From assembly GCA_000320545.1 (NCBI GenBank), contig ADNK01001386.1:186001-250000 (forward strand): a stretch of 64,000 bases of DNA, written 5' to 3'. This DNA is from Bigelowiella natans CCMP2755. Its lineage: Eukaryota > Protista > Cercozoa. The notes under the pieces were generated by a model, which worked only from the letters and a program-made list of their open reading frames with translations, did not search any database and was not told the DNA's origin. Position numbers and translations under genes: made by a program. Positions 836 to 10,456 of this stretch are shown one piece after another (positions within the stretch are counted from its first letter, which is position 1; each line of letters opens with the position of its first letter).

Positions 836-1879
836 TTTTTAGCATGCCACGGTGTCGTCTCGGAATGTTCGGATGCACCTGTTCTTGTTGTTGTTTGTTG
901 TTGTTGTTGTTGTACTCATTCTGTTCCTCAGAGTTAGATGTTCTTCCGATCAGAAGGGTGTCTTTACTTATAGCTGTGGCAGTCAAGAATGCGACTAGAA
1001 CAACTCACTGTGAACAATTGTCGTTAGGTAGTCAAATGGTGCGATTTTACTTAACTAAACCGTGAACAATGGTTAATGAATACAACAAAATCGGCAAATT
1101 ACCAAAATAAGTTGCTGCTAGATCTAGATCGATAGTGGCTCGTGCCAACCTTGTCTACCAAGTCTGTGTCAACGCTCTCTTCCTTCACCTTTTTTGTGTT
1201 TTTTTTCCTAAAAAAACCTAAAAGAACCAGCCTGCTCGTGCTGGTAACGTTGTCATCCCATTATCTGCTTGTATCAGGAATTGTAATGCCCAATTTCATA
1301 TAAGACTTCAAGATTTCATTGTCTTTGTTGGAGAATAGCATTTGATTTTAGTTCATTCTCGTAAGATTAGTAACCTGTATAATCTTACTTGACTGTTTTT
1401 GTTCACTCTCGTAGTGGCCGTAACTGGATTATCTGACGACGACCCCCTGATCTGATCTGTCTCACTCCGCACAGACCCACTGCTCTGGCTCGCTAAGAGG
1501 AACACGGGGAGGAAGAAGAGGCAACAGATTCCAGAAGACAGACTGCAGATAGAGACTGCAGATAGCAACAGTACCTAGCACTTCCAGTGATTGCTCACGC
1601 CGCGTGTGGGGATAAGGAACCTTGTGGTATATCTATCTCTAGTCGAGACCTCGCAGCAGTTGCCTAGATCCAGAGAGTCTCATGAAGATTGTAATTTTAT
1701 GATTAGAGGGCGGGATGTTGTTGCTTCGTATTTGTTGTTGTACCTCATCCTCCTCCTCCTCCTCCTCCTCCTCCTCCTCCGCCTCCTCCCCTCCTTTTCC
1801 TCTCCCCTTTCGCTGACTGTGTTGGCCAAATTTCTATCTGGTGCTACAGTTCACATATTTGGAAAAAAAGAGATAAAAA

Positions 1880-3827
1880 ATGTCGAAAGGACTCTATATT
1901 GCTACTTTCGATTTTGAGAGTGTTGAGGAAGGCCAATTGAGCATCAAGGAGGGGGATATCATAATCCTCATAGAGAAGGATGACAGGTGAGACTGGACAT
2001 GTAATAGAAAATAGTGATCGAAGAGAACATGAGTATTAATTTCAGAAAATATCTTCTCACTGTCTGATGTTAATTTCATTTGAATTCTCAGCGGTTGGTG
2101 GTTTGGCCGGCAACAAAAGGACCACGAGCAGGAGGGCCTGTTCCCGTTCAACTACGTGGAGCCGTACAAGCCTTCAGCAAAGAAACTAACACCTCCTCCT
2201 CGTCCTAACATTGGTGGAAGCTCTGGCGAACTATCATCAACATCTGCTTCCAAGAAACACCTGTTATTGACAAACAACTCTTCGCAACAACTAAAGTCTC
2301 CTGGGAACTCAAGTGTTGGTAATGTGCTGCGACAGCATAATACGAGCAGTCCTGTATCGACGCAGGACGTGGTTGTTTCGATGGGAAAAGGAGCGGAAAA
2401 AAAGGTGTGTGATTATTATGTGTTGTGGTACTACAACGAAGATATAGAGACTTTAGTATATCGTTATCTCTTCATTCCGTCCTCAGATCTCTATCTCTGT
2501 TGTTGAAATCCATGTTTCCCGAGATATATTCATTACCTCCACCCTTATCACGTAATCCTCTTATGATTTACATCGTAGTTTGTAGCCCGCCCCCCTTCCG
2601 CTCGACCCCCTCCTCTTTCCGGCCCCCACCCCCCCGGTAAAGCTCAGCCAGCCCACCGTCCAGGCTCCCCTAAGACCAAGGCGTTTGAAACCAAAAGCCG
2701 TGCCGAGGGGGGGAAAAAGAAGAAGGATGAACCTGAAACCGTTTTCCGCAAATATGCTCACGTTCAAGTGGCCTATGGATGCTCGATGCTGTGCTTCTTT
2801 CTGGGTATTGGGGGTGTTGTCCTGGGTGGCCACGGCCTTGGGCTATTTTCTCCCGCCTATGAAATCGCCGCAGGAGTCATCGGAGCCATGTACTTCTATC
2901 ATTACAAACAACAAATCAGACAAGTGCATTGTCACTTTACTCATTCCGTTACATCGCGTTTTTCTCGTCTTGGTCATTAGAATACCCCTCTCATGTTGTC
3001 GCTGACATCTTCCTTTCGCTGATACATAATACATACATACATACATACATACATAACATACATACATACAACTTTTGCAAGATACGGACTGTGGTTGTAC
3101 TACCACGAGACGAGAAACGATGGCGCACCATGGGGCTCACAAGCTCCTCTACGTGCAATGCTTTGGATTGCTTCGGGATGTGCTTTTCTTGCCTCCTTTG
3201 CTCTACTGACTGCGGGACTCTCGCTCATAGGAGCAGGTATCACCGACATTGTCGGTTTTTATCGAGGGGAGCAGTACAAGGCGCCCAGGAAGAAAAAGAA
3301 AGTTGTTGAGGAAAAGTCCATGTAAAATCACAACAGCATCATCACCATCTCACCAATATTAGTTTAAGAAGGAGGGAAGAATTCTAATCCCCACAGTGGC
3401 ACTTACCACGATACATACGATGCACACAGACACCGATGCAACAGTACACAAAACGGGAGCCAGTCTGAAACAACAATATCAAAATATTATCCAGGTGTGA
3501 GAAGTTTGAGGAGTGGCTTGCGAAGGAGGTTAAGAAGGGACGGCCTTTTGTCTTCTGCTGCGTCTATATCGGAGCAAACATTGTCGCATGGGTTGTCACT
3601 GCGATCGTATGGTTTGAAATCCTTGGGAAGATGGACGAGGATAAGAGGTTGAGCACCTGGGCTCCCTTTGCAAAGGTTAGGAAAGTCACCGTTCGATGGA
3701 TGTATTCGAATGCGAGTAACTATTATGTGCACTCAAGATGCGTGTTAATTGACCATCAGGCTTTTGGGGCAGTGATCGATATCAATAGTTCGCTCATTCT
3801 CATCCCCCTTTGCCGCACGTAAGCTAC

Positions 3828-3864
<37 letters not shown>

Positions 3865-4536
3865 TAGTAATAGTAGTCATACTGCAAGAAGGCATGTATA
3901 ACGTTACTATTTCTTGGAGGAGGTGATAACGACGCAGCAGGAGTTTATTCTTCAATGTGCATTCAGGTTCCTCCGTATGCTGTACAACGTCGCATCGTCG
4001 GAGGAGAGCTATATTGCTTACGCGCTTCGCTTTGTGTTTTCATGCATCCCTCTCGATAAGAACCATACGATGCATCGTCAACTGGCCAAGTTGACTCTAC
4101 TGGGTGTTGTGGGGCACACTGTCGTCCACTTCATTAACTATTCGATAAAGCCAGAGCAGGTAGTAGCAGCAGCAGCACAGTAGCAGCAGCAGTAGCAGCT
4201 CGAATATGCTATTTCATGAATGAGGCTTCTAGAGACAGACAGCTGCCTTTTTTCAAGGAGCGGGAGCAGCATTGAATAACAAAATAATTATAGTGCAGAG
4301 TGTGTAGAGTTGTAAATACAACACACACACACACACACACATAAGACCAAGTGAAACCAGCAAATTATGATGACAATGGGATGATAATAATGATAATAAT
4401 GAAATGATAATCATAACAACTAGGCGGTAAAACGTTTTGGCCTGTGGCCATTTATTTCGGGTATGACTTTGCTGGTAATCATGGTCTTCATCTATGCTGG
4501 CGGGTAACAATAATATATGTGTTAGCAGCAGCAGCG

Positions 4537-4571
<35 letters not shown>

Positions 4572-4915
4572 TGGAGTCATACTGAAACAATAGCATATCA
4601 TTGTCATCCTTTCCCCCTTCCTTGCCGGGCAAATCTTTGCTCTTCTTCCTTCGTTTTGGTGGTACGATGACGATTATTCATCGTATTATCATAGATTCGA
4701 GATTGTGAAACGAGGGACCTTTGAGATATTCTGGTACAGCCATCACCTATTCATCCTGTACTTTCTGCTCATCCTCGTGCATGGAAATGGCGGATGGAAC
4801 CCCAACTTCTGGAAGTATCTTCTCATTCCTGGCTTCTTTTACCTCTCGGAGCGAATTCTTCGGGATTGTTTCCGTGCTAAGAATAGCGTAAAGGTACTGC
4901 TACTGCTGCTGCTGT

Positions 4916-4949
<34 letters not shown>

Positions 4950-6208
4950 GTGGTGTAGCAAGCGGTAGATTGTGATGAAACACACGCCATCAAACGCCAC
5001 CAAGAATTAACGCGTCCGATCGCTTTTGAGGGTTTCTTCAATATCATCACCAATATCCAAAGGTAATGAGCGTGATGACAATGGAGCCGCGCCTGATTTC
5101 GCTTGAGTTCGATAAGAAATCCGCCTTCTACAACGGTTTCAAGGAGGGGATGTACGTCTTTATCAACGCTCCAAGCATCCGAAAGTAATGATTAAGTTAT
5201 GGCCATGTTCTCTTCTTGCTTTCATTACCAATTACCCCAAACTTGTTTCACAGTCCAAAAAAAGGTGCCTTGGGCACAAAACATCGACTGTTATTAGTCT
5301 CTTTGTTAATTCCTCCTTTTAACTGACGAAAATGGCCACAGAACAACCGATCATCATCGACTTTGTTCTCAATACATCTTCTCCGATTTGCCCTCTTCGC
5401 TATTCCGATGTTACGATAGACTTTGTCATATTGCCATATTTGAAGATCTAGTAAGTTGCTCATGAATGCTGTCTTCCTTCCTTCTAGTGATGTGAGCGCC
5501 TCATCCTCCTTCCTCTGCTTATATTATTATTATTATTTGTTGTTGTTGTTGTTGTTGTTGTTGTTATTGCCTTGTTTGTTTTGAAGGTACGAGTGGCATC
5601 CGTTCACAATCTCAAGCCCTCCCCACAAGGACACTTTTACCGTTCATATTCAAACACAGGGAGCGAATAGGTGGTGGACCACAACTACTGTGTGCTATCA
5701 TATCCGTCATAACTTCATATACAAACTTTTGAGTTCTTTTAACCTTCCTCCCCTTCCCCTCCCCTCCATCGTCTTCACGCATCTCCAGTTGGACGTTGGC
5801 AGTCAAGGAGTACATGTTATCTCTTGGGCCTAAGGGCGCTGCTTCTTTCGAGCTCACCTCTCGACAACAGGATGGTGTTATGGGGCCGGGCAGAGTACGT
5901 AGAAATCCATCACCAATCCAGATATTTGCGCTGTTCATTTTCTTCCTCTGTATTATTCTTTGTTTCCAAGCTGTGATTTGGTGATGATGATAGTTGTTGT
6001 ATCTGATCCATTTATTGCACGAATTACCACAGGTTTTGGGCCCAGATGGCAACCAGCTTTTCTTGATTGATGGCCCTCACTCAGCGCCTACGCAGCACAT
6101 GACGGAGTACGACCATGTTCTCGTAGCTGGAGCAGGAATTGGCCTCACCCCTGTCGCGGCGTGCGTTCAAAGCGTAGTCTTCCATCGGTGGCATTTCAGG
6201 TCACTCCC

Positions 6209-6242
<34 letters not shown>

Positions 6243-7100
6243 CCCCATGATGATGATAACGAAGATTTTTTAATGCTTTATAATTGACAATTCTCCACAT
6301 GTGCTGCCTTTGAACAGTGTGGGTAAATGCTACCCGTCCCATGCGCACTTTGCATGGGTTGTCTCGCACCGCGATGTCCGTGCGTATCGGTGGTTTGTGT
6401 CGCTGCTCAAAGACGTTCAGGACTGCGTGGTCAACATGCGGAAGAAGTCGGCCGAATCGATGAAGACGAAGACATTCAAGTTTCATATCTACGTCACATC
6501 GGTATTTGTTACTTGTGTTTGTATTAGTCTACTACCGACGTTCGTTGTTCCTTCAAGAGTAAATGTGTAAATTTGGGCTATTGTCTTGTCGCCTTAGGCT
6601 CCGAAGGATTTGAATGAGGCAAAAGAATTTGCAGGTCTTGAGTCAAGCGAAAAGAGCGACCCCAACTTCTGGGGAATTCCTGCCCCAGAATCGAAAGTGA
6701 TCGTGGAGCATGCAAACTTCAGCAAGATGGACCTTTACAAAGCTCTCTTGGCTCCGAAAAAGGAACAGCAACTTGGTGATATTTGCATCTACAGGTCAGC
6801 TGAACTTAAGATGAAAGAGAAGTCGGAATGGTGGTGAGGACGGCGGGAATAAATAGAGATTGAGAATCAACAAATCAAAAGCTTCGTGTAGGTCAAAAGG
6901 CCGCTTGATAATTTTTTCCCTTTACACAGTGGGCGACCAAAGTGGGATCCTCGTTTCGAAGAGATATCTAAGCTGCATCGTGGCGAAAAGTCGGTGTCAT
7001 GTTCTGCGGAAACCGCTTTGTCGCCGCGGCCTTGAAAGACGCATGTAGAAAGCATTCGGAAGGCCCAACATCGTTCACATTGCACAAGGAAAACTTCTAA
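1880..7100 (+). CDS. NOX: NADPH oxidase (NOX2/gp91phox-like, no EF-hands) fused to an N-terminal SH3 domain, proline-rich linker and p22phox-like membrane domain; about 16 exons
   Basis: Exons 1880-1986 and 2092-2404 give an SH3 (LYIATFDFESVEEGQLSIKEGDIIILIEKDDSGWWFG...EGLFPFNYVE). Exons 2579-2889 and 3082-3321 give a p22phox-like TM region ending RGEQY. From 3495: NOX TM1-2 (AFGAVIDINSSLILIPLCRT), heme His pairs (LDKNHTMHRQLAKLTLLGVVGHTVVHFIN; FEIFWYSHHLFILYFLLILVHG), FAD motif EWHPFTISS, NADPH motifs IDGPH, GAGIGLTP, GRPKW, GVMFCG, and terminal HKENF*. All junctions are GT-AG and in frame. Confidence 0.92.
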
Positions 7101-7225
7101 AGCTCCAATTGGTTCTTCTATTCACGGGGACATGTTCATATTTGCAAGTCTAGAGTGCTCATGATCTCATTGACGTTGTTGCATCATGCAATGGCGCAGT
7201 AAATTGTCAGTCAAAATGGTGGAAT

Positions 7226-7308
7226 TATAGACATGTAATATCATATATATAATATATATGCTGATACTTATTATAGACATGTAATATCATATATATAATA
7301 TATATGCT
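7226..7308. repeat. Short direct duplication (~37 bp x2) downstream of NOX
   Basis: ttatagacatgtaatatcatatatataatatatatgct occurs at ~7226 and ~7272. Confidence 0.8.
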
Positions 7309-8244
7309 ATTACTGTGTCTATTATTGGAAAGTGCCGACATGCTAGCAAGCGCTTGTGTTTGCTGCTAGGCTGTGCAAAGCTACAAAAGCGCGTCCCTTG
7401 ATGTGATCATGCCTAGGGTGTGGAAGCACTGTTTGTATAAATGATGGCTGCTCGCGTCCTATAGCATGTTCCTTCTACGATATACATGTGCGCTGCTTCG
7501 ACCGTAACAATATGATGATTTTCGCGCATGCTAGCATGGAATGATGTGCAAACATTGTTTAGCATTATTATTATTGCATCAGCTAGTAAATCTCTACTAA
7601 TGTGCTTGATTAGTAAGTAGTATTGCGTTGGTATTCGGTCGAGCGGTTTAAAGTGCAAAGACACATGGTTTATTATAGACACGATAAGTCTGCTACAATA
7701 GATTTCACATACATAGTGATATCATGTTTTTACCGCTGTTATTAGTCTTCCCTGCATGTACAAGATGCAGCGACAGTACAGTTCGCTATGCCGTGCAAAT
7801 CATTTAACATGGATGAACAGCATGCATATATTTGTGCATGTACAAACAAGATATTTATGCCTAAATCATGAAATGCGTGCAGATGCTGCTTGATTGTAAG
7901 AAACCTGTATTACCCATAGTAAACTCTAATTATCAGTGTATAACTAACAACACATAGCGTAACAGTTTTTTATTTAAATATGAACATAACAGCACAAGTA
8001 GATGATGGAAGATGTACTGTGATATTCTTTTATACTCTTTACAAATGTCGTCCATGAAACACTACCGCCTCGCTATCATACTTCCAATAGATGCCCAAAC
8101 GCAGCAGCAACTAAACTCCAATACACTTGCAAGCTGTCATTGCTGGTTAGGCAGTGGCGACACCCGCCGTTTGGCAATATTCGGACGGACGGTAGAAGCA
8201 GCAATGAAGATCGACTTGATAGTGACACACAGTAGTGCAGATAT

Positions 8245-9954
8245 TTAAGGAAGTGAGTTGACAAGCTTAGCCAATTTGTCATAGTTAGGTGTTCCAAGTC
8301 CAGTTACAGGATCCCAGCCTTTGCTTGCAGGGAACCCTCGAGGCCCGCACCCTTCTCCCGCTTCGTTCGCACCGTCAGTTATGTCCATGAAGGCCCCCGC
8401 GTTCTTGTAAAAGAGCGGGTTTAGAAATCCCAGCGTAGGTTTGTTTTGCTTGAGACGCAAGTCGTTGAGGAGGGTTACGACTCCGCTGAATGTAGGACAT
8501 GCGCAGCTTGTGCCATCGACTGATTGGATCACACCGAAATCAACCACTTGGAAGTTGGTGGCCTGTGCGGCCACATCCGGGAATCCTGCTCCAGTTTGAT
8601 TAAAATGGCTAGCATCCGGGAGACGACGTTTTGAAACACTATCGAAGTACTCAGACACCGCGGATCTCTGATAGTCAGGTCGATCCCATACGTCAGAGAA
8701 TCCTCCTGCAGAGCCGCTCCACGCCGTCTCATCATCGACATAATCACCAAGTGTGGTCCCTCCAACACCTGTTACCCACGGCGACCCAGCGGGCCATTGG
8801 CCTTGAAACCTGGATTTAGGGCATGTGCCATCGTCAGTTGCTACTCCATAGTCCCCCGTCGCGAACAGAAGAGAAATCCCACGTGCAGCAGCTTTCTGGA
8901 ACTCGACATTTATGCGGTGCATGTACGCTGAAGAGACACTGTGTTCTGGCTCTCCATAGGACGTTGAGAAGACTTTGGGGACATCTGCATCTGACGTGTT
9001 ACCCACAAGGTAGATCCACTTCAAGAAAGGCTCGTTTTCAGGATTATCAGGAGCGCGTCCGGAGAAGCTCCAAAACTCTGTGTTAACGCCTCCCCCGATG
9101 GCGGTGATGTATTGTATGTCAAGACTAGCCTCCACTCCGGCCTCTCCATCGTTTGGTCCCACCACTTTGATCTTCTGACCTTTTGCTTCAGGATAAAAGT
9201 CCTTCCAAAATTTGTCAAGATCATTTTGACTGTAGTATTGCTCAAGGAACGCTGTGCATGCCTGCTTGCCTAGATCCCCTTCCACTTTTCCAATCTTATA
9301 CAGCTTTCGAAGACTGTCGGGGGTGTTATCGTCTTCTTCATCTTGTGCGCTTTGACCTTTTCTAGTGATCATACTACGGCGGGAATGGCGGATATATGGT
9401 TGGGGAGAAGGAAACCGCACAGTCGGGGAGATGAAGTCCACACTCGCAGATACATCATGAGGTAGGGAGTAATGAGGTGTCCTCAGCACCGTCACATTGG
9501 ATTTCAGATGCTTGTAGTAAAAATACTTGGCAGATAAGAGATTTTCAGCATGAGTAACAGTTGTGAGGCACTTGATGAAATCGTGGTTTGAGGTTGATTC
9601 ACAATCTGTGATGTTATTAGATTCAAGATGGGACATGACGACGGATACTGAGTCCGGAGCCGGAGCGATGAGCTCGTTCACTTGCTCCAGCGTCAGGTGT
9701 TCTCCATAGGCCATCGATTCGGGATCTGAGGTTGCAAGTACCATTTCTTCGAGGAGATGCTTGTCAGTTTGCTTTACTGCAACAATGATCTCGAGCGGTT
9801 CTTCAGCCTTGGCCCTCCCAATCTGCTTCCATTGCCAGCTTGGAGGCCCTTGAACATCTGATTCATGAAAAATGCGCACCTCCGGCCTCGCTAATGTAAC
9901 GCTAGTAAAAACTCCAAAGATCGCAGCTAATAAATGTGAACAATAGGTTGGCAT
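8245..9954 (-). CDS. TPP1: Tripeptidyl-peptidase I / sedolisin (peptidase S53) with signal peptide and pro-kumamolisin prodomain; intronless
   Basis: Likely start MPTYCSHLLAAIFGVFTSVTLA (signal peptide). Prodomain SDPESMAYGEHLTLEQV; catalytic EASLD, SYG, ATGDYG, GFPDVAAQ, GTSCACP (Ser); Ca-site GWDPVTGLGTPNY. Confidence 0.95.
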   Translation of the reverse strand: MPTYCSHLLAAIFGVFTSVTLARPEVRIFHESDVQGPPSWQWKQIGRAKAEEPLEIIVAVKQTDKHLLEEMVLATSDPESMAYGEHLTLEQVNELIAPAPDSVSVVMSHLESNNITDCESTSNHDFIKCLTTVTHAENLLSAKYFYYKHLKSNVTVLRTPHYSLPHDVSASVDFISPTVRFPSPQPYIRHSRRSMITRKGQSAQDEEDDNTPDSLRKLYKIGKVEGDLGKQACTAFLEQYYSQNDLDKFWKDFYPEAKGQKIKVVGPNDGEAGVEASLDIQYITAIGGGVNTEFWSFSGRAPDNPENEPFLKWIYLVGNTSDADVPKVFSTSYGEPEHSVSSAYMHRINVEFQKAAARGISLLFATGDYGVATDDGTCPKSRFQGQWPAGSPWVTGVGGTTLGDYVDDETAWSGSAGGFSDVWDRPDYQRSAVSEYFDSVSKRRLPDASHFNQTGAGFPDVAAQATNFQVVDFGVIQSVDGTSCACPTFSGVVTLLNDLRLKQNKPTLGFLNPLFYKNAGAFMDITDGANEAGEGCGPRGFPASKGWDPVTGLGTPNYDKLAKLVNSLP

Positions 9955-10456
9955 GGTGGGCACGGGGGGGATGGGACGCAAATCTCTATCCCTAGCTGCT
10001 TCGTGCCTCGAACAATGATGGTGGCAGTGGTCTACCTCGTACGTACCTTTAGTCAGGATCAAAGCGATAGATCGGTTGTCGCAAAGGAGAAAAGGGACTC
10101 ATTTCTTTGGTAGTCGCAGTACTCAAACTGCTGTGGTGCAAACCAACAACCCAACAACAACGACACCCAAGAAGGAACGGAAGGAAGAAGACCCTCCTCC
10201 TCCTCCTCCTCCTCCTCCTCCTCCTCCTCCTCTTTTTCTCTTCTCTCATCACCCTTCCCTTCTTCATTCTCCGTTTTCCTACCCTCGTTTCTGTATTTTG
10301 CTTCGTATTCTATCAAGTCGGGAGGAAGGGCGGCACAGGTTGGTTATTTCCAAGAGTACGAATGAACATTTCCACGTTGGATTAAGCATGTTTTCATATT
10401 TCATCATCTCTATTGATTTAGTTTCGTCCTACAGCTTTGTCAGTCCCCTTCTTCTC

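Follow-up and report, generated by a model that had tools for sequence, protein, structure and literature searches.

In animals, the SH3, p22phox and NOX parts of the NADPH oxidase are separate subunits. Human NOX1-4 require p22phox, the product of a chronic granulomatous disease gene, and p47phox or NOXO1 dock by their SH3 domains onto the Pro-rich cytosolic C-terminal region of p22phox. The fungal enzymes NoxA/NoxB, with NoxD (Pro41), and the Dictyostelium Nox, with CybA, lack EF-hands and need a p22phox homolog, which in those systems is encoded by a separate gene. In NOX5, plant RBOH and DUOX the regulator belongs to the same chain and precedes the catalytic core; it is a Ca2+-binding EF-hand region, to which DUOX adds a peroxidase-like domain. 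Naegleria gruberi is described as having a NOX that itself contains an SH3 domain (architecture M17 of Zhang et al. 2013, PMC3591440), which was taken to indicate that a Pro-rich partner regulates the enzyme; by that paper's description the SH3 lies in the C-terminal NADPH-binding domain, and no p22phox-like module is reported. The same authors call the origin of p22phox unknown (PMC3591440), and a survey found p22phox and its partners restricted to opisthokonts (PMC9421330).

The 64,000-nt stretch of Bigelowiella natans DNA analysed here (the window) carries, at positions 1418-7244 of the forward strand, a single spliced gene of 17 exons (JGI model Bigna1/135715) that encodes an SH3 domain, a relative of p22phox and a NOX2-like core. 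One mRNA and one ORF unite these parts with the Pro-rich region, as the initial annotation had proposed, and the public gene model of the locus is likewise fused. The features of the gene are as follows.

1418-1626, forward strand: non-coding 5'UTR exon (nt 1-209 of cDNA L003, 99.5% identity), followed by an intron at 1627-1848
1849-1986, forward strand: start-codon exon (ATG at 1880) with the first half of the SH3 domain (translation; joint 1986/2092 present in contigs)
2092-2404, forward strand: second half of SH3 (GWWFG...FPFNYVEP), PPPRP motif and Ser/Asn-rich linker (joint 2404/2579)
2579-2889, forward strand: second Pro-rich stretch, basic patch, p22phox-like TM1 and most of TM2 (AF2, HMMER)
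3082-3321, forward strand: remainder of the p22phox-like domain, from the last part of TM2 with its invariant Glu (...YYHE) over a short loop in the cytosol to TM3 and TM4 (HMMER), and in the same exon the RGEQY motif and a Lys-rich linker
3322-3494, forward strand: fusion intron of 173 nt (GTAAAA...CCAG), holding TAA 3323-3325 and TGA 3466-3468
3495-4893, forward strand: NOX transmembrane (ferric-reductase) domain, TM1-TM6, in five exons (3495-3675, 3760-3818, 3967-4159, 4424-4503, 4695-4893; Ferric_reduct match; all joints GT..AG)
5063-5894, forward strand: FAD-binding exons (5063-5184, 5587-5670, 5789-5894) with the HPFTISS motif (FAD_binding_8)
6033-7100, forward strand: NADPH-binding exons (6033-6199, 6318-6501, 6598-6794, 6930-7100) with motifs GAGIGLTP, GVMFCGN and C-terminal HKENF (NAD_binding_6; cDNA mapping)
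6986-6989, forward strand: A-run with a 1-nt assembly deletion, A4 in the window and A5 in all transcripts
7098-7100, forward strand: stop codon TAA, with 3'UTR on to about 7244

Transcript contigs of 3079, 3013 and 2093 nt, from three independent studies, cover 1849-7203 with every intron spliced out. The MMETSP cDNA L003, which differs from the spliced window by 11 SNPs and a 1-nt indel only, carries a complete ORF of 904 aa; an in-frame stop lies immediately 5' of the ATG at 1880 in this cDNA, and its mapping places the 3' end near 7244. At junction 3321/3495, flanked by GT..AG and compatible in phase, removal of 3322-3494 drops the TAA at 3323, restores a Met codon (AT|G) and brings the p22-like exon into frame with NOX TM1. 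The initial annotation had pointed to this junction as the place where transcripts should be sought, and it is spliced in the contigs of all three studies and in the cDNA: contigs from runs X1, X5 and X6 pass over the intron with 179 nt of flanking sequence, and L003 lacks it. This evidence consists mostly of assembled contigs and cDNA, the number of raw reads across 3321/3495 being nil. The locus might thus be read as two adjacent genes, one encoding SH3 and the p22-like domain and ending at the TAA at 3323, the other a separate NOX gene, with the joint transcript due to read-through or to chimeric assembly; contigs are no proof of single molecules, and with the intron retained the upstream frame does terminate, as ...EEKSM-TAA, at 3323-3325. 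Against this stand the canonical, phase-compatible splice itself and the lack of a start codon in the NOX exon: its frame contains a TGA at 3466-3468, no in-frame ATG was found in it ahead of TM1, and its first Met comes only after TM1, so that it needs the upstream exon, as had been noted from the sequence.

Relatives of the gene bear on the same point. There are at least four copies of the fused gene in B. natans, in two of which p22-like TM2 through the NOX C-terminus is a single uninterrupted exon, and the frame of the paralogs on C1058 stays open for 702 aa, from p22 TM2 to the end of NOX. In other taxa, too, the homologs are fused: about 35 proteins have a p22-like domain directly N-terminal to NOX, from sources that include Bigelowiella, Amorphochlora, Leptophrys and a Ploeotia transcriptome. 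The splice evidence, the missing NOX start, the single-exon paralogs and the fused homologs essentially refute the two-gene reading. The single fused gene is one of a family whose p22phox-like–NOX architecture is conserved in a protist clade: the fused proteins, from Rhizaria and other protists, form one group with SH-aLRT support of 100, distinct from fungal and amoebozoan NOX, and in our tree, with its limited sampling, the nearest clade comprises chytrid, ascomycete, basidiomycete and amoebozoan NOX. All six p22-like profile matches in the B. natans genome adjoin NOX exons, and the same profile search of that genome found no stand-alone p22-like copy; an exhaustive phmmer search with exon 3082-3321 returned fused proteins only.

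In the window itself the final NOX motifs are out of frame, due to the 1-nt deletion at 6986-6989, which shifts the frame over the last about 36 codons. The spliced CDS of the window as written is 2714 nt long and reaches a wrong-frame end 22 codons early, so that the protein would truncate at ...HRGEKSVSCSAETALSPRP*, and the same frameshift leaves the public model P0001 with an incorrect C-terminus. Taken at face value, the early end of the CDS and the altered P0001 would make the locus a pseudogene deprived of its C-terminal NADPH-site residues. This is highly improbable: the extra A, after 6985, and an intact ORF are found in all contigs of the three studies (X1, X5 and X6) and in the MMETSP cDNA, both of the two raw reads of X21 also have the extra A, and the site is a homopolymer, where assembly errors are typical.

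The homology of the four-helix segment to p22phox (CYBA) is supported both by profile searches and by fold. A profile of 10 SH3-less homologs, searched against the PDB, matches human p22phox with E 1.5e-8, its only significant match outside NOX, and positions 67-191 of the profile align to p22phox residues 3-145; a profile of the domain alone gives p22phox (E 3.5e-7) as its sole significant PDB match, the next having E 2.7. HMMER pairs part of exon 2579-2889 with p22phox residues 8-77 and part of exon 3082-3321 with residues 88-139. The gapless alignment of the domain's end proposed in the initial annotation is the one HMMER gives (RAMLW...RGEQY to RAVLH...RGEQW), and the parallels suggested there for TM1 and TM2 fall in the same register. 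Among 31 homologs Glu253 and Glu307 are invariant and Arg268 is at least 90% conserved; in the HMMER alignment Glu253, Arg268 and Glu307 fall on p22phox E53, R90 and E129, of which we take E53 and R90 to be sites of disease mutations. A significant profile match to p22phox was obtained with the two family profiles, but not with the Pfam p22phox model: with the cutoff relaxed to E<=10, PF05038 still misses the B. natans protein, and it matches nothing in a six-frame scan of the B. natans genome, and the domain is unannotated because of this miss. Searched as single sequences against the PDB with phmmer, the exons did not find p22phox. PF05038 does match the domain sequences of three of eight relatives below threshold (best E 0.0048), and none of the other Pfam families recurs in more than two of those eight.

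An AF2 model of the domain has four helices (pLDDT 84, pTM 0.74), of which H9-38 and H45-69 map to exon 2579-2889. Compared with 48,161 PDB chains, it best matches the p22phox chains 8kei_A and 8gz3_A (Z 12.5 and 12.4; rmsd 2.8-2.9 Å over 108 residues, with only 16-17% identity), ahead of a next best Z of 9.1; a Z of 12.5 can be reached by chance for helical bundles, but here it is 3.4 above the next match. The resemblance to p22phox structures that the initial annotation proposed to look for stands out in this predicted model by a clear margin. Foldseek also places 8gz3_A first, with probability 0.99 and TM 0.56-0.58, though with an E of only 0.2. The readiness with which four-helix bundles match, the low identity and the Pfam miss would all be compatible with an unrelated, convergent 4-TM module, such as a Flower- or TMEM72-like one, that merely resembles p22phox, and a protein-language-model search did rank 'Flower' 4-TM proteins (0.88) above p22phox clusters (0.85), all being below the 0.9 that counts in that search. 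Such convergence seems improbable, since p22phox is the only significant non-NOX PDB match of two family profiles and clearly first in the structural ranking, E, R and GE(Q)W/Y are conserved at the positions where they stand in p22phox, and the domain adjoins a NOX2-like core, the sole context in which p22phox is expected; the Flower and TMEM72 Pfam models match no member of the family, while PF05038 touches three of the eight.

We therefore treat the segment as a p22phox relative, and animal cytochrome b558 (NOX2/gp91phox plus p22phox/CYBA; 8GZ3, 7U8G, 8KEI) is among the closest known systems. The same two membrane modules are present, but as one polypeptide rather than a heterodimer, and the four-helix domain, which aligns to p22phox residues 3-145, is predicted to share the p22phox fold as well. 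It differs from animal p22phox in having a TM2-TM3 loop about 20 residues shorter and in not keeping His94, which is Trp in the B. natans protein. Its Pro-rich motifs and SH3 are N-terminal, with no C-terminal Pro-rich region; what lies between TM4 and NOX TM1 is a Lys-rich linker of about 30 aa. The p22 module begins and ends on the cytosolic side, an arrangement compatible with its being fused head-to-tail with NOX. In an AF2 model of the p22-like part together with the NOX TM domain (374 aa; pLDDT 91), the pLDDT of the p22-like part rises to about 96, and the pTM of 0.87 suggests that the bundle packs on the NOX core in cis.

The NOX core is complete, as had been claimed. Against solved structures the 10-homolog profile finds NOX2 best (E 1.8e-84), with NOX5 at 3.7e-72, and the AF2 TM-domain model matches the structures of NOX5, NOX2 and DUOX1. 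On the transcript-derived protein P0003, Pfam detects Ferric_reduct (E 5.6e-10), FAD_binding_8 (E 2.9e-13, residues 558-644) and NAD_binding_6 (E 6.3e-12), but no EF-hand; the cis module here is a membrane subunit plus SH3, unlike that of NOX5, RBOH and DUOX. The heme-ligand His pairs H440/H454 (TM3, 14 apart) and H511/H524 (TM5, 13 apart) are invariant in the 31 homologs, and all the dehydrogenase motifs are present (HPFTISS, GAGIGLTP, FCGN and the final F). The fused protein is a putative NADPH oxidase. FRE-type transmembrane ferric/metal reductases share this domain set, distant relatives bear database names like 'predicted ferric reductase', and B. natans is an iron-limited marine alga, all of which would suit a metal reductase rather than a dedicated ROS-producing oxidase. 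That assignment is nevertheless unlikely, if somewhat less so than convergence of the four-helix bundle: among solved structures NOX2, NOX5 and DUOX are nearest (E 1e-84 to 1e-58), the clade groups, with limited sampling, with fungal/amoebozoan NOX and not with FRE sequences, and p22phox partners are known solely for NOX-type enzymes (PMC9421330).

The N-terminal SH3, whose coding region is interrupted by a 105-nt intron, is opened by ATG 1880 as originally annotated, and in the spliced product SH3_1 matches residues 7-54 of P0003 with E 5.1e-13. Beside it, N-terminal to the four-helix bundle, lie the Pro-rich motifs PPPRP and RPPSARPPP. The SH3 probably has a regulatory role; together with the Pro-rich region it would act as a docking or autoinhibitory module for regulators, in place of the Pro-rich tail at the C-terminus of animal p22phox, and this pair in cis may be a minimal form of the p47phox-p22phox switch.

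Taken together, we read 1418-7244, with a probability of about 0.82, as an expressed B. natans gene for a 904-aa, ten-helix SH3–p22phox-like–NOX flavocytochrome. In it a cytosolic SH3 is followed by a disordered linker with PxxP/PPPRP motifs, the p22phox-homologous four-helix membrane bundle, a basic linker of about 30 aa and the NOX2-like core, comprising six TM helices with two b hemes and then the FAD- and NADPH-binding domains. The bundle, packed in cis on the NOX transmembrane domain, would take the role that free p22phox has for NOX1-4, stabilising the heme-loaded core. Electrons would pass from NADPH to FAD, to the inner heme, to the outer heme and on to O2, so that superoxide or H2O2 would form on the non-cytosolic side.

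Literature searches found no published description of a fused SH3-p22phox-NOX protist family, in agreement with the earlier view that this architecture is not recognisable among the described NOX classes. With a true p22phox relative inside the NOX chain of a conserved protist clade, the range of p22phox reaches Rhizaria, and the family poses a concrete question of fusion versus fission. It is conceivable, though we consider it rather doubtful, that p22phox arose as the N-terminal half of an ancient NOX of ten helices and later broke away, the fused form being ancestral in the EF-hand-less lineage and split by fission in animals, fungi and amoebozoans; if so, the open question of the source of p22phox would be answered, and a natural single-chain cytochrome b558 would be at hand for structural and mechanistic work. 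The single-polypeptide 'cytochrome b558' is a natural test system for the share of p22phox in heme loading, stability and activation, and in this marine alga the B. natans enzyme is a candidate producer of superoxide outside the cell.

The window is eukaryotic DNA; its introns are short (GT..AG), and trinucleotide repeats fill a large number of them. The gene under study, proposed in the initial annotation as a one-gene oxidase joining an SH3 domain, a p22phox-like segment and a NOX catalytic core, is laid out as follows, together with neighboring features:

1418-1626, + strand: 5'UTR exon (cDNA)
ATG at 1880, + strand: start of the SH3 domain, which is interrupted by a 105-nt intron
C-terminal to SH3, + strand: Ser/Asn-rich linker with a PPPRP motif (translation)
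Between that linker and the hydrophobic segment, + strand: second Pro-rich stretch, then a basic patch (translation)
2579-2889 and 3082-3321, + strand: exons encoding the hydrophobic segment of ~120 aa (translation)
3323-3325, + strand: stop of the p22-like frame, ...EEKSM-TAA (unspliced frame)
3495, + strand: start of the NOX TM1 exon, 173 nt downstream of the p22-like exon, its frame shut upstream by a TGA at 3466-3468
3826-3880, 4160-4200, 4318-4340, 4530-4570, 4898-4950, 5525-5570 and 6212-6245: intron repeats (sequence)
Near 7244, + strand: 3' end of the transcript (cDNA)
7227-7325: short direct repeat beyond the gene's 3' end, with copies near 7227, 7266-7275 and 7321-7325
8245-10062, - strand: intronless 605-aa ORF for an S53 (sedolisin/kumamolisin-type) peptidase (Pro-kuma_activ, E 7.8e-37; Peptidase_S8, E 5e-6)

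On translation, the description first given of this region (SH3, a hydrophobic stretch of ~120 aa, a TGA at ~3466 and a NOX exon with no start of its own) proved exact, and no in-frame ATG lies ahead of NOX TM1 in the frame of the TM1 exon. The splice donor (AT/GTAAAA) and acceptor (CCAG/G) are phase-compatible, restoring a Met codon at the joint. The TAA at 3323-3325 overlaps this donor (AT/GTAA, 3322-3325), and a retained intron would encode a 325-aa SH3 plus p22-like protein without NOX. Long repeats of tri- or dinucleotide units -- (GTA)n, (GCA)n, (CA)n, (CTA)n, (TGT)n, (GAT)n -- occur in most of the gene's introns, and the read mapping shows a build-up of unrelated contigs with repeats at 4160-4200. 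The repeat at 7227-7325 is probably a dispersed repeat or the end of another transcript, since in all runs it is covered at very high depth, with several variant bases and 'goes back' joints.

In a search of sequencing runs, some 20, all from one organism, contained about half of the words of the stretch, a share that equals its exon fraction. Contigs from three studies were mapped to the window; they include single spliced contigs of 3079, 3013 and 2093 nt, spanning 1849 to about 7200, from which all predicted introns are absent, including 3322-3494, where the joint has 179 nt on its shorter side. The cDNA contig L003 is also spliced across 3321/3495, and the proposal of a single gene is thereby upheld. 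Exon 4, used as the query of an exhaustive phmmer search, returned two proteins: P0001 (861 aa, 100% identity), which is the JGI model Bigna1/135715 of Bigelowiella natans and is already fused, and P0002, a fused relative of 734 aa. The P0001 cluster includes P0003, the 904-aa ORF of an MMETSP transcript, whose cDNA, L003, has an in-frame stop immediately upstream of the ATG. When joined, the 16 coding exons of the window equal the L003 ORF apart from 11 SNPs and one absent A at 6986-6989. (The exons were joined only for this comparison; the inputs to searches and folds were natural cDNA contigs, L003-L010, together with database proteins.) The A-run at 6986-6989 is A4 in the assembly versus A5 in all transcript contigs and in both of two raw reads, so the frameshift there is an assembly error, not the mark of a pseudogene; it is because of this missing A that P0001 reads into an intron and acquires a false C-terminus (...YRSAELKMKEKSEWW).

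At least four fused copies are present in the B. natans genome, and no stand-alone p22-like gene was detected there. Further NOX genes lie at:

G000:C1058:19101-21146, - strand: nearly intronless, one of a divergent pair
G000:C1058:25658-27703, + strand: nearly intronless, the other of the pair
G000:C776:59514-63539, + strand: many small exons, with a p22-like exon
G000:C2882:55808-57565, - strand: p22-like exon not detected

The two C1058 copies, ~4.5 kb apart, run from p22 TM2 through the end of NOX without an intron, as a 702-aa open frame, and are DNA-level proof of the fusion, independent of splicing; one of them has an in-frame TAG.

The identity of the four-helix segment is not apparent from standard family models. 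The Pfam p22phox model, PF05038, matched neither the B. natans exons nor the whole protein, an exon-by-exon Pfam scan yielded SH3, Ferric_reduct and FAD matches, all of them weak, but no p22phox, and p22phox was likewise missing from the PDB matches of exons 3 and 4 in phmmer. The sole six-frame genome matches to PF05038, L001 and L002, are both Pro-rich low-complexity stretches and were rejected as p22phox genes. Word-based searching recovered no stand-alone relatives of the p22-like domain (78-247 aa), weak evidence from a length- and word-limited search, and with the domain region of P0003 it returned only that protein's own cluster. Profiles were more informative. A 31-homolog profile was swamped by SH3 matches in the PDB and was rerun with SH3-less members; the resulting ten-member profile matched NOX2 (1.8e-84), NOX5, DUOX1 and p22phox, the last as chains 8gz3_A and 7u8g_B at E 1.5e-8, with profile positions 67-191 against residues 3-145. 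A domain-only profile (A3), built from eight natural cDNA references, matched p22phox at E 3.5e-7, with no other PDB match below E 2.7. Its HMMER alignment reproduces the p22phox register originally put forward: ...lyEkysggkrkssk pairs with LLEYPRGKRKKGST, PlRalvyl... with YVRAVLHLL..., and GEeY with RGEQW. Within the p22-like family an invariant Glu ends TM2, a near-invariant Arg begins TM3, and a second invariant Glu lies in a G-E-x-Y/W motif C-terminal to TM4; human p22phox differs in having about 20 additional loop residues. PF05038 is touched, below threshold, by three of the eight domains.

A language-model search of a protein atlas gave leads all below 0.9 (Flower 0.88, p22phox 0.85); the Flower/TMEM72 identity was dropped, as none of the eight domains matches the Flower or TMEM72 Pfam models. 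The AlphaFold model of the p22-like domain has four helices (pLDDT 84), and in a structural comparison with 48,161 PDB representatives the first two places go to p22phox chains (Z 12.5 and 12.4; next 9.1); Foldseek also places 8gz3_A first (TM 0.56-0.58), with a weak E-value. We conclude that the four-helix domain is a divergent homolog of p22phox.

The catalytic core is complete in P0003, as had been claimed: Ferric_reduct, FAD_binding_8 and NAD_binding_6 domains (Pfam), two His pairs with NOX spacing that are invariant across the family, HPFT, GxGxxP and FCGN motifs, and a C-terminal Phe. Four plus six helices would place both the SH3 and dehydrogenase domains in the cytosol, and the p22-like helices are flanked by basic residues, consistent with this topology. 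A single-chain AF2 model of the p22-like and NOX TM domains (pLDDT 91, pTM 0.87), in which the p22-like part has higher confidence than when modeled alone, suggests a defined cis interface between the two.

The same domain order was found in other protists. A search with P0002 yielded about 35 proteins (700-1017 aa) that align over its full length. Their named sources are B. natans, Amorphochlora amoebiformis (two paralogs), the vampyrellid Leptophrys vorax and a Ploeotia vitrea transcriptome, the rest being transcriptome or metagenome contigs. In a local HMM scan, almost all members whose N-terminus is intact have the p22-like domain immediately ahead of the NOX core; the scan gave no p22-like match in the long-branch members P0048 and P0051, and most other members without the domain are truncated fragments. 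SH3 is present in most fused members and missing from some. In the cDNA of P0002 (L004), the closest relative, a run of N lies within a Pro-rich stretch that precedes the p22-like domain (1-330), and no SH3 is recognizable in that region in any frame. In a maximum-likelihood tree of NOX cores, for which plant RBOH served as outgroup, the fused proteins group as a single clade (SH-aLRT 100), beside which, across an unresolved fork, lies a clade of chytrid, higher-fungal and amoebozoan NOX.

SH3 has been noted in a Naegleria NOX, and the origin of p22phox called unknown (Zhang et al. 2013, PMC3591440), and p22phox has been considered restricted to opisthokonts (Massari et al. 2022, PMC9421330). 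No account of a naturally fused p22phox-NOX protein turned up in a full-text literature search, in agreement with the early view of the architecture as undescribed; the B. natans iron-response paper does not mention these genes, and the public gene model is annotated merely as hypothetical or FAD-binding FR-type.

The anatomy of the SH3-p22phox-NOX gene can thus be stated with high confidence, its function being a prediction from sequence. Ferric-reductase activity of the protein is conceivable. As an oxidase, it would be a self-contained flavocytochrome b558, its heme-binding core stabilized by the p22-like bundle in cis, with electrons presumably passing from NADPH to FAD, the two hemes and O2; the SH3 and adjacent PxxP motifs may then serve as a docking or autoinhibitory switch, replacing the pair formed by the p22phox tail and p47phox.
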